Assembly: GCA_029953675.1 (NCBI GenBank)
Contig: JAMWBK010000003.1
Location: 682,001-746,000, forward strand
DNA length: 64,000 nt
Reading direction: 5' to 3'
Origin: Rhodosorus marinus CCMP1338
Taxonomy: Eukaryota > Plantae > Rhodophyta
The position numbers were made by a program, and so were the translations under genes. Positions 35,259 to 38,300 of the stretch are shown piece by piece. The notes beneath the pieces are model-generated. The model saw only the letters and a program-made list of their open reading frames with translations. It searched no databases and had not been told where the DNA came from. The stretch's first letter is position 1, and the number at the start of each line of letters is the position of its first letter.

Positions 35259-38200
35259 ATGGATGGTTTGGGGTTTATAGGGGTGAACTGCCCCCGGCTT
35301 ACCAACCCTTCAGCCAGGACGAGGCGATGCTCAGGAAGGCAGGGTGAAGGGAGGTTGAAAGTACAGCGCGTTGTACTTGGGAGAGAACGATGCGTCCTAC
35401 GGATGGAGCCAGGGGTGCAGGCCCAGACACGGGCATTCGCGGCAACTGGATCGTCCGGAAATCCAAGGATCCTGATCTCCGGGGCGCCGGCGTCGGGTAA
35501 AGGCACGCAGTGCGAGCTTATTGTTGAGGAGTTTGGCGTAGTACATATTTCTACAGGTGATATGCTCCGTTCCGCAGTGAAGAACAAGACCGAGCTCGGG
35601 TTGAAAGCCAAAGAGTTCATGGATGCTGGGAAACTGGTAATGCTCTTTCTACACCCGAACACAAGGACTTTTCCTTTACCACCTTTGCTTGAGCGCCGTG
35701 ACTAGGAGTTCTCACTATAATGATCTGATTTGGTCAAAAAAAAAAAGGTTACCGATGAGCTGGTTATCTCGATGCTCAAGGAGAGGCTTTCTCAACCTGA
35801 TGTAGCTCGAAATGGGTACTTGCTTGACGGGTTTCCAAGAACCTCAGCCCAGGCGGATGCCCTCGATGAGGCGGGGTGAGCCTATACATACACTGGTTTA
35901 CGCTTGCTTTGAAGGCTCCGTTTTTCTTGAATCACTAACGGAGGATGCGAAAAATGACGTTCCGCCCACGTAGCGTCGGTTTTGACGCGGTCGTGAAGCT
36001 CGAAGTTCCGGATGAAGTTCTTGTTGAACGCGTTATTGGTAGACGGTCCGACCCAGAAACTGGAAAGGTCTATCACATGAAATTCAGTCCCCCAGAGTCT
36101 GAGGAGATTGCGGAACGCCTCGTACAGCGAAGCGATGATACCGAAGAGAAGGTTGTCAATCCTGAAACCTGAAACTCGTGGCCTTGAAGAGTCCCGATTG
36201 CTAGGTTCCTAACCCTGGCGATTGACTGCCGTGCAGGTGAAAGTAAGATTGAATGCATTCTACGAACACGCGGCCGCAATCGACAAAAAGTACAGCGACG
36301 GCTCGCTGATGACGGTCCTGAACGGGAACCGCGACAAGAACGAAGTCTTTAGTGACATCTCGAAGATAGTCAGGGCCTCGGTTTCCAAGAGAAATCCCCT
36401 GAATACGATTATCATGGGGGCGCCTGGGTCTGGGAAGGGAACTCAGTGCGAGCTCATTGTCGAGGAACTCAACTGCGTACATCTCAGCACTGGAGATATG
36501 CTTCGCTCCGCGGTGAAGGCGCAGTCAGAGCTCGGCAATCAAGCCAAGGCCTTCATGGATGCTGGAAAGCTGGTAACCTTTTTTCATCAGGACAGAGAAA
36601 CTGCTGTCCATGAGTTGGCTTAGCTTTTTCTCGCCACTCCGTGACCCGCCGCTACAGGTTCCCGACGAGCTCGTTATAGGACTTATTGAGGAAAAGCTCC
36701 AAGACCCGGTAGTCAAGAAGAATGGGTGGCTTTTGGACGGATTCCCAAGGACGGTTGCGCAGGCTGAAGCGCTGAAGTAGGTCTAAGCACTGAAGTAGGT
36801 CTAAGCAAGGGACATCATATCCCACCTTAGCGCTGGACTCGCAGCACCGGAATTGCTCAATCACGTCTTTGGAAACGTTTGCCCTCCTTTCTGCTCACAG
36901 GGCTGCTGGTGTGGCTCCTGATGTTGCCGTTTCTCTGGAGGTACCGGATGATGGTTGGTTTGGAAATCCTAGTTAATATTTTGAATTGTTGGGGGCATGG
37001 AGTCTAAGGTTTCAGCTCCCCTCTTCCGACCAAAACTTTTTACTCAACAGAAATAGTCCAGAGGATTGTCGGGCGTCGAAGCGATCCCGAGACCGGTAGA
37101 ATCTATCACTTGACTTTTGACCCCCCAGAAACGGAGGAGGGTAAGTATCTGAGGCACGCCTTTCAACTTGTCCAGGGCAATGTCGTTTCTCACAAAGTGA
37201 ATTGTTGTTCTACGTGCCGTAGTCGCATCTCGACTCACCCAGAGATCCGATGACACAGAGGAGAAGGTATTCTCAAAGACGCCCAGTTGGACAAGAAGCT
37301 GCAGTGGATAATGTAAGAGGGAATTTTGTGACGATGTGTGCCTTGTAGGTTCGAACAAGATTGGCTATGTACAAAGAGAATGCAGACCTGGTTAAGAACG
37401 AATATGGAGACAAAGTTGTTCTTATCAACGGCGTACAGCCGAAAGCTGCCGTATTCGATGATGTTCTGAAGGAGATAGAGAGGTTCTCCAACGACGACAA
37501 CGACGATAGCAACTCCAAGTCAAGCGCTCCCTCCATATCTGACTTCGTGCGAAAAGCTGAGGAGGCCTTTGAGAAGGGATATCTGGAGAATGAAGATGTT
37601 AACTGGTATCCTTTCCCGTTGCAGTTCTCATAGCAACCTACCATATTCCCAGAGAACTCAGAATTTGTCAAACTGCATGCCATGTGTTCCTTCGCTGACT
37701 CGCACAGGAGTGGACAAGCGGCTGCTGAGGCTTCTCGCATTGATCCTGGAACTTCATCAACCAGTGACATTGGGATGAGACCAGCGCTCGCGACTGGGGA
37801 CGTTTTGGCTTTCGTTGTGTTCGTTGTTATTGGGCGCCTACGACATGGAGAGTCTGTGTTGACGCTGGTAAGCGACCTCATGCCATGGAACCATTCTTGG
37901 GCAGGATATGAAAACTTGCGAAACTTTTGCTGAAATTGCCCTGTGTTTTTGTCAGGACGCCGTGTCAACAGCCGCACCGTTCCTAATCGCGTGGCTGTCA
38001 ATTTCACCTTTCCTCGGGGCTTACACGTCGAAGGCTACCGAATCCTGGAAGTCGTTGTGGTCATACCTTCTCAGATCCTGGGCAGTCTGCATCCCGGTCG
38101 GTCTTGCAATTCGCGGGGCTGCGACTCAACACGTTCCGCCAGCTCCTTTCGCCGTGATCAGTATGCTGACAACCCTATTCCTCTTGGCGTCGTGGCGATC

Positions 38201-38300
38201 CGCTTATTTCACTGTAGCCGGTCCTACCGTCGAGGGAGATCGGGGAGCCGGACTCTTCGACGGTTTGAAGATGATCTTGACCCTCGTTAGAAGGTGGTAG
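35259..38300 (+). CDS. Plastid-targeted tandem adenylate kinase (2 AK domains) fused to a C-terminal DUF3054-like membrane domain; about 11 exons
   Basis: Transit peptide MDGLGFIG...; two P-loops ([20 protein letters not shown]), two STGDMLR, two LLDGFPRT and two GRRSDPETG...QRSDDTEEK. In-frame splicing across 37606-37707 and 37868-37955 leads into [18 protein letters not shown]...TAAPFLIAW...ASWR...LTLVRRW*. Confidence 0.85.
36772..36807. repeat. Perfect 18-bp tandem duplication (CTGAAGTAGGTCTAAGCA x2) that duplicates a 5' splice site in AK domain 2
   Basis: Direct read; each unit contains AA|GTAGGT. Confidence 0.95.

Follow-up and report, generated by a model that had tools for sequence, protein, structure and literature searches.

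An adenylate kinase-adenylate kinase-DUF3054 fusion gene of Rhodosorus marinus and its distribution in red algae

Background

Is a plastid adenylate kinase (AK) of red algae held at a membrane by being part of the same polypeptide as an integral membrane protein? This question is raised by a gene of the red alga Rhodosorus marinus CCMP1338, located in a 64,000-nucleotide stretch of contig JAMWBK010000003.1 (positions 682,001 to 746,000, forward strand; hereafter the window), a piece of a eukaryotic nuclear genome in which the GT..AG introns are short. The gene encodes two tandem AK domains, AK1 and AK2, followed by a DUF3054 (PF11255) domain with four transmembrane (TM) helices. AK sets the ATP/ADP/AMP balance, and its position decides which ATP users and producers get buffered. 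We consider, with a probability of roughly 65%, that the product is a plastid-targeted, integral-membrane AK with its kinase domains at the stromal face, encoded by a nuclear gene common to the red-algal classes sampled.

If this reading is right, adenylate buffering in the plastid would be localised in an unusual manner throughout red algae, by an AK that is part of an integral membrane protein. The sequence and the domain composition are already public (NCBI, UniProt, MMETSP), so what the present analysis contributes is a comparison between lineages rather than a new gene; the protein itself is uncharacterised and conserved phylum-wide.

Gene structure and transcript support

We spliced 11 exons by hand from the three-frame translation and obtained a coding sequence of 2088 nucleotides (nt), corresponding to a protein of 695 amino acids (aa). 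The ten introns are all of the GT..AG type and 82-124 nt in length. From the N- to the C-terminus the protein is composed of an Arg-rich presequence, AK1, AK2, an acidic spacer, a conserved helix with the WSGQA motif, the four-TM DUF3054 core and a C-terminal helix ending in LVRRW (Table 1). Intron 9 begins with GTATCC, has CTGAC 8 nt before its CAG acceptor and rebuilds a Trp codon (TG|G); our model reproduces exactly the position, splice signals and frame that the preliminary description of this locus had given for it.

Table 1. Features of the AK-AK-DUF3054 gene and its neighbours (positions of the window)
Feature	Position	Strand	Remarks
Whole AK-AK-DUF3054 coding region, ATG to stop	35259..38300	+	hand-spliced model; corresponds to Rhodosorus marinus NDN08_002962
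Exons 1-6	35259-35636, 35748-35875, 35974-36151, 36237-36572, 36658-36776, 36901-36953	+	
Exons 7-11	37051-37140, 37223-37266, 37349-37605, 37708-37867, 37956-38300	+	
Presequence, aa 1-66, putative red-algal plastid transit peptide	35259..35456	+	Arg-rich, Phe at position 6
AK domain 1, aa 67-279, exons 1-4, introns 1-3	35457..36389	+	adenylate kinase models, P-loop GAPASGKGT
AK domain 2, aa 280-492, exons 4-9, introns 4-8	36390..37498	+	adenylate kinase models, P-loop GAPGSGKGT
Acidic spacer, aa 489-501	37487..37525	+	read from translation; length and sequence differ between orthologues
Conserved helix and NWSGQA motif, aa 502-532, across intron 9	37526..37720	+	conserved in red-algal orthologues; AlphaFold2 helix at model residues 4-17
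Intron 9, joins AK part to DUF3054 part	37606..37707	+	102 nt, phase 2
DUF3054 core, four TM helices, aa 553-669, spans intron 10 (37868-37955)	37781..38219	+	PF11255
C-terminal amphipathic helix	38250..38297	+	extension confined to eukaryotic DUF3054 among members sampled
Possible polyadenylation signal AATAAA	38398..38403	+	about 100 nt past stop codon; pattern search alone
Upstream membrane-protein-like open reading frame	32571-33143	-	without NCBIfam match
RIO1-type protein kinase	39739-41043	+	188 bits
Ribonuclease HII (RNase HII)	42516-43295	-	207 bits

The model was compared with public transcripts and genomes. The translated open reading frame (ORF) of one MMETSP transcript of Rhodosorus marinus (P0411) has 695 aa, ends in LVRRW and aligns over all 695 residues with 94% identity and 0 gaps; this gapless alignment therefore supports all ten junctions as well as the upstream start codon. 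The NCBI protein KAJ8906469 (P0001, NDN08_002962, 647 aa) is 100% identical to the model from Met49 on. Moreover, the ORF for this architecture runs without interruption in two intron-poor red-algal genomes, those of Cyanidiococcus yangmingshanensis (L001 3001-5238) and Porphyridium purpureum (L002 2992-5238, 748 aa, ending in TTLLRRW). The proposal that one spliced frame encodes the presequence, both AKs, the acidic linker and a four-TM DUF3054 domain thus holds.

The model would be an artefact if AK-AK and DUF3054 were adjacent, separately transcribed genes. Such a merger might be suspected because a reading of the frame places an in-frame stop 10 codons on when intron 9 is retained, because a Met lies just before TM1, and because an intron-9-retaining isoform does exist among the MMETSP Rhodosorus ORFs (P0417, 536 aa, ending in NWYPLPLQFS). 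That Met is, however, not conserved, and retention also affects intron 10 (37868-37955, in P0416) and intron 6 (36954-37050, in P0418), so that it looks like incomplete splicing rather than a dedicated switch, even if a regulated retention of intron 9 is possible. The full-length P0411 crosses the junction, the NWSGQA motif that intron 9 splits is kept in most aligned red-algal orthologues, and the single ORFs of Porphyridium and Cyanidiococcus have no intron at which two genes could have been joined by mistake. These observations refute the two-gene scenario, to which we assign a negligible probability.

Start codon and plastid targeting

As start codon we took Met1, the first ATG past an in-frame stop, with 100 nt upstream free of any ATG. 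The NCBI model begins instead at Met49 (35403) and omits 48 N-terminal residues, including the Phe motif described below. We rejected this start since Met1 is the first ATG after the in-frame stop, three out-of-frame ATGs (35263, 35327 and 35390) lie between Met1 and Met49, and the transcript ORF P0411 begins at Met1 too.

The N-terminus reads MDGLGF, and the first 70 residues contain 12 R against 1 D and 3 E. In the comparison with P0411 the presequence diverges faster than the mature part. The orthologues of Gracilariopsis, Gracilaria, Eucheuma and Porphyridium (the last from its internal Met) begin with MAFV or MAFL. The plastid-targeting signal of rhodophytes and glaucophytes is an N-terminal Phe-based motif (PMC7038456). 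Such presequences are basic, contain few acidic residues and carry at their very start an aromatic residue, in most cases Phe; the window protein has these features at the sequence level. Because the Phe motif of the window protein and of its orthologues agrees with the rhodophyte one, plastid targeting of the predicted protein is well supported as far as the sequence goes. The transit peptide that had been suggested for this gene fits both this motif and the nearest known structure, which is that of a chloroplast enzyme.

A difference in annotation concerns the other end of the Porphyridium purpureum orthologue. The corresponding NCBI entry, named 'Adenylate kinase 8' (P0008, 813 aa), reads ...LLRRC followed by 68 unrelated residues that derive from a predicted terminal intron, whereas the genome has the plain 748-aa ORF whose TTLLRRW end is as in all orthologues.

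Adenylate kinase domains

Both AK domains were recognised by adenylate kinase models. TIGR01351 matched with 449.3 bits against a cutoff of 168, in two separate stretches of which the best is 285-486, and NF001379 matched a stretch at 70-249, in AK1. As previously noted, the P-loop, the nucleoside monophosphate (NMP)-binding motif (TGDxLR), DGFPRT and the LID arginines (GRR, RxDD; RSDDTEEK) are intact in each of the two domains, from which we infer that AK1 and AK2 of Rhodosorus are both catalytically active. The best match in the PDB is maize chloroplast AK, 1ZAK (E 3.9e-67), and the second is Adenylate kinase 8 (9fqr chain G8, E 3.7e-65).

The intact motifs are not found in the second AK of every orthologue. 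In the Cyanidiophyceae-type proteins P0079, P0081 and P0083, and in P0033, AK2 has kept its length, but neither the Lys of the P-loop nor the NMP and DGFPR motifs; the degenerate P-loops read GPPLSGVEK and GAPGAGRRA. This AK2, which stands next to the membrane domain, is probably a pseudokinase.

Duplication of the adenylate kinase

AK1 and AK2 are 58.7% identical in sequence, and their exonic DNA is 72% identical over 169 nt. Introns 1 and 4 coincide exactly, in phase 0 after AGKL, and so do introns 3 and 8, in phase 0 after DTEEK. Introns 2 and 5 are both in phase 2 with an offset of 3 codons, and introns 6 and 7 are present in AK2 only. By our own arithmetic, 3 introns in one domain and 5 in the other, placed on about 640 possible sites, would coincide exactly at two positions with a chance probability of about 2e-4. 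Accordingly, two earlier statements stand: that both AKs have the intron positions AGKL|V and DTEEK|V in common, and that an internal duplication occurred at the DNA level. The data fit a tandem duplication of an already intron-bearing gene, whose introns were later lost in Cyanidiococcus and Porphyridium; to assume instead that introns were gained in parallel at AG|GT sites would be less parsimonious.

The duplication is old, because in a neighbour-joining (NJ) tree of AK domains the AK2 sequences of Rhodosorus, Porphyridium and Erythrolobus cluster together (78% bootstrap), AK1 of Rhodosorus groups with the single AK of Florideophyceae (69%), and across species the P-loop reads GAPASG in first or single AKs and GAPGSG in second AKs. 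The tree and this P-loop signature rule out a recent duplication specific to Rhodosorus. The AK duplication was probably ancestral to red algae, and AK2 would later have been lost in Bangiophyceae and Florideophyceae.

The DUF3054 domain

The precomputed Pfam assignment of the identical NCBI protein P0001 places DUF3054 (PF11255) on the C-terminal 150 residues, and the orthologues carry the same assignment. A homologue search with the C-terminal 196 aa returned nothing and missed even the identical P0001, which we read as a word-index limit; a profile search with the C-terminal region was used instead and retrieved 1490 representatives at E <= 1e-3, including bacterial proteins of 130-170 aa with the conserved polar residues described below; those members of the family whose annotation was inspected are all labelled PF11255. 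NCBIfam has no DUF3054 model, and its sole match, EPS_sugtrans with 14.5 bits, is at chance level.

For the structure of this part we ran AlphaFold2 on a 16-sequence alignment. The model has four TM helices, at model residues 52-72, 80-100, 111-137 and 143-168 (pLDDT 86-98), with one helix before and one helix after them. When the model was compared with solved structures in the PDB by Foldseek, no relevant structural relative emerged (best E 0.68, TM-score below 0.3). The window protein has the conserved residues of the family, precisely GD in TM1, GRxxHxE in the loop after TM1, TAAPFxxxW in TM2, R in TM3 and WR at the end of TM4, and these are invariant or nearly so in both the algal and the bacterial alignments.

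The orientation of the domain was considered from the distribution of Lys plus Arg. In bacterial DUF3054 their mean number is 3.9 at the N-terminus, 3.7 in loop 2 and 2.7 at the C-terminus, against 1.6 in loop 1 and 0.8 in loop 3, and the red-algal domains follow the same trend. This suggests a topology with both termini inside; by homology with the bacterial domain, the red-algal AK domains should therefore face the stroma.

Distribution of the fusion and of its parts

The AK-DUF3054 fusion was present in every red-algal class sampled. Its carriers are Rhodosorus among the Stylonematophyceae, Porphyridium and Erythrolobus among the Porphyridiales, Cyanidiococcus among the Cyanidiophyceae (with the degenerate AK2), Porphyra among the Bangiophyceae (with one AK) and Gracilariopsis, Agarophyton, Gracilaria and Eucheuma among the Florideophyceae (also with one AK). 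The fusion proteins of Rhodosorus, Porphyridium, Gracilariopsis, Porphyra and Cyanidiococcus are already in NCBI/UniProt. We found no paper characterising AK-DUF3054, DUF3054 being mentioned only once, and in passing, in the literature searched, and a search of the literature on membrane-bound AK of red algae gave nothing relevant.

Outside red algae DUF3054 was found as a stand-alone protein with an N-terminal extension. This is the case in the green lineage (Chara, Diphasiastrum, Bathycoccus), as had been stated for plants, in the glaucophyte Cyanophora and in organisms with red-derived plastids (Vitrella, Fibrocapsa, Nemacystus, Guillardia). Most eukaryotic members have a C-terminal helix ending in [KR]RW, which is common to the red, green, glaucophyte and red-derived plastid lineages and was not seen in the bacterial members sampled. 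DUF3054 appears to be an older, independent plastid membrane module: green plants and a glaucophyte have it unfused, and it is also present in bacteria.

The helix that precedes TM1 and the WSGQAG motif are common to red algae and to the stand-alone proteins of Vitrella, Fibrocapsa and Nemacystus. Since these three proteins are free of AK, WSGQAG belongs to the DUF3054 module rather than to a contact surface with AK. In an NJ tree built from the DUF3054 domain, the red-derived stand-alone proteins fall among the fused red-algal ones. We did not rely on this tree, which is unresolved, with 2-16% bootstrap at its deep nodes and a numerical warning in the distance step; the shared WSGQAG motif is the better evidence.

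The AK pair, in turn, occurs on another membrane protein. The matches nearest to the window protein include tandem AK pairs (about 50% identity) whose fusion partner is LrgA/LrgB (PF03788/PF04172). They are database predictions and occur in stramenopile-type proteins, such as that of Nannochloropsis oceanica, in Chromera velia and on other contigs (P0037, P0040-P0042, P0044, P0045, P0049, P0058, P0067, P0094 and P0099). These proteins represent a second, independent fusion of AK to a membrane protein. In several of them the two AKs hardly differ in sequence, which points to a recent duplication or conversion. We know of no study of these fusion proteins. The plant relative of the LrgA/LrgB domain, PLGG1, is a plastid envelope protein. 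Many proteins with three and four AK domains were also present among the database matches.

Genomic context of bacterial DUF3054

Bacterial DUF3054 proteins consist of the core alone, about 115-170 aa, and have the same conserved residues (GD, GRxSHxE, TAAPFxxxW, R, WR). The bacterial relatives nearest to the red-algal domain are from Chloroflexi (Ktedonobacteraceae, Chloroflexales). In 7/7 Chloroflexi contigs of the Ktedonobacteraceae type (L003-L008 and L010; for example L010 1654-10456) DUF3054 closes, on the same strand, a System I cytochrome c maturation (ccm) cluster. At the single locus that was read with flanks of 10 kb, the gene order is redoxin, CopD-like, CcmE, CcmF, CcmH, three unassigned genes, CcmA, CcmB, CcmC-like, a small ORF and DUF3054. 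The distance between the small ORF and DUF3054 ranges from a 4-nt overlap, at one locus, to a gap of about 110 nt. Since the seven DUF3054 proteins are just 40-56% identical to the reference, this order has been kept over considerable divergence; the seven loci represent one clade. A literature search on a link between DUF3054 and ccm found nothing. Placement in an operon is a feature of these bacterial genes that has no counterpart for a eukaryotic gene of the nucleus.

The bacterial context beyond Chloroflexi was represented by one locus and one paper. In Fimbriimonadia, DUF3054 lies between ORFs that we read from their translations as rhomboid-like/TPR and ogt-like, with no ccm gene. Its neighbours in Rhodococcus jostii are TetR, flippase-like and YceI genes, and there it is part of a deletion carried by a recovered clone (PMC12169178). 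No genes of adenylate metabolism were beside DUF3054 in the Chloroflexi, Fimbriimonadia and Rhodococcus contexts. At one Chloroflexi locus (L008 5562-7035) two thymidylate-kinase (PF02223) genes directly follow DUF3054 on the same strand; these are the only nucleotide-kinase neighbours seen and, as a single case, they may be due to chance.

Proposed function and alternative readings

In the reading that we prefer, a membrane-anchored plastid AK, an F-type transit peptide would bring the protein into the plastid, where the four DUF3054 helices would insert into the inner envelope or the thylakoid membrane with both termini stromal. The two tandem AKs of the plastid type, held by the flexible acidic spacer at the stromal face, would then equilibrate 2 ADP = ATP + AMP near the membrane, and DUF3054 would serve in red algae at least as the anchor; the benefit under selection would be the tethering itself. 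Four points weigh against this reading. The presequence was assessed by eye and not by a trained predictor. The intron-9-retaining P0417 would give a soluble AK pair, so that part of the pool may not be anchored. Two active kinases are not a feature of the whole family, given the degenerate AK2 of Cyanidiophyceae. Finally, pure tethering may be too modest a role, because the conserved intramembrane Asp and Arg and the His/Glu loop indicate that DUF3054 has a function of its own and may be more than an anchor.

What that function might be was considered under two alternatives. DUF3054 could consume, produce, transport or sense adenine nucleotides, with the fused AKs feeding or gating it. The charged residues just mentioned, kept from bacteria to algae, are such as a transporter or an enzyme would have, and the retention of the fusion in every class sampled would be explained, as would the helix with WSGQA that most aligned orthologues keep between the AK part and TM1; the degenerate AK2 of Cyanidiophyceae, adjacent to the membrane domain, could sense nucleotides as a pseudokinase, and the two thymidylate-kinase genes directly after DUF3054 at one Chloroflexi locus point the same way. 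The helix and WSGQ, however, stay with DUF3054 in the AK-free proteins of Vitrella, Fibrocapsa and Nemacystus and are hence not a device for coupling to AK; AK and DUF3054 are separate proteins in the green, glaucophyte and red-derived lineages; AK pairs of this type also sit on the unrelated LrgA/LrgB; and the bacterial neighbours are ccm genes (7/7 Chloroflexi), rhomboid- and ogt-like ORFs, or TetR and YceI. We consider a functional coupling of this kind unlikely. For the same reasons the Rosetta-stone link between DUF3054 and adenylate homeostasis, put forward in the preliminary description, is weak: the fusion is confined to red algae with DUF3054 alone in the red-derived lineages sampled, and it is further weakened by the AK pair on LrgA/LrgB and by bacterial neighbours that are ccm or unrelated genes. 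Alternatively, DUF3054 could assist in handling heme or in maturing cytochrome c, in which case the red-algal protein would act in cytochrome biogenesis, possibly even in mitochondria, which in red algae use the Ccm (System I) pathway. This is suggested by the place of DUF3054 at the end of the ccm cluster in all seven Chloroflexi contigs, at most about 110 nt from the preceding gene, and by the invariant His in the loop after TM1, which is predicted to face outside. The association is, however, that of one bacterial clade and is not seen in Fimbriimonadia or Rhodococcus jostii; the red-algal N-termini have the plastid F-motif, the AK is of the plastid 1ZAK type, nothing ties AK to heme, and plastids use System II and not Ccm. 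We regard this alternative as very improbable and as a speculative lead. In a further, likewise improbable reading, DUF3054 would be a small membrane transporter or cofactor handler not recognised before, for which the Chloroflexi ccm operons suggest heme or cytochrome c maturation as the process, and the red-algal fusion would wire nucleotide supply or sensing to it as a real coupling.

Comparison with known systems

The AK part resembles the plastid AK of the maize 1ZAK type, which we take to be Arabidopsis AMK2-like, in being of the long type, in the motifs of its P-loop, NMP-binding and LID regions, and in its expected stromal location. The plant enzyme is a single soluble domain, whereas the window protein has tandem AKs joined to a four-TM protein. 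With Arabidopsis plastid AK5 (At5g35170), which carries a C-terminal DUF1995 that our literature check did not confirm, it would share the appending of a domain of unknown function to a plastid AK. DUF1995 is a soluble domain unrelated to DUF3054, and it is not in the Pfam list of P0001, which has ADK and AAA-type families and PF11255 only.

The stand-alone DUF3054 proteins have the same four-TM core with the same residues and, in eukaryotes, the same C-terminal ...L[VIL][KR]RW helix; they differ in the lack of AK and, in bacteria, also in the lack of both flanking helices. Ciliary and flagellar multi-AK proteins, such as Adenylate kinase 8 of 9fqr, likewise have tandem AKs in one chain and differ in being without a membrane domain; they are soluble and dock to the axoneme in flagellated cells, whereas flagella are lacking in red algae. 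The AK-AK-LrgA/LrgB proteins are alike in having tandem AKs N-terminal to a polytopic membrane domain, although that domain is unrelated to DUF3054.

A plastid AK with a lineage-specific C-terminal module that fixes its partner or location is known from Chlamydomonas reinhardtii: ADK3 has, as had been stated, a CP12-like tail, a short disordered CxxxPxxxxC peptide that binds GAPDH (PMC9406205). The window protein has an integral membrane domain instead; CxxxPxxxxC is absent downstream of AK2, where the sole Cys lies in TM3 (AVCIPVG). Plastid-type AK has repeatedly been joined to different modules, namely DUF3054 (red algae), LrgA/LrgB (some red-derived lineages) and the CP12-like tail (Chlamydomonas ADK3). 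This recurrence suggests that selection acts on the location of AK, and the parallel LrgA/LrgB fusions suggest that membrane tethering of plastid AK may have been selected more than once. As to DUF3054, which is widespread in plants, algae and bacteria, two leads are now available: its red-algal fusion partner and its position at the end of the Chloroflexi ccm operon.

Additional features of the locus

Antisense ORFs within the gene had no support. The neighbouring ORFs (Table 1) are unrelated to the AK-AK-DUF3054 gene. An 18-nt tandem duplication (36767..36802, +) was detected by a repeat search; its two copies, AAGC[G/A]CTGAAGTAGGTCT, are 94% identical and duplicate the donor of intron 5, and splicing at the second copy would bring an in-frame TAG inside the exon.

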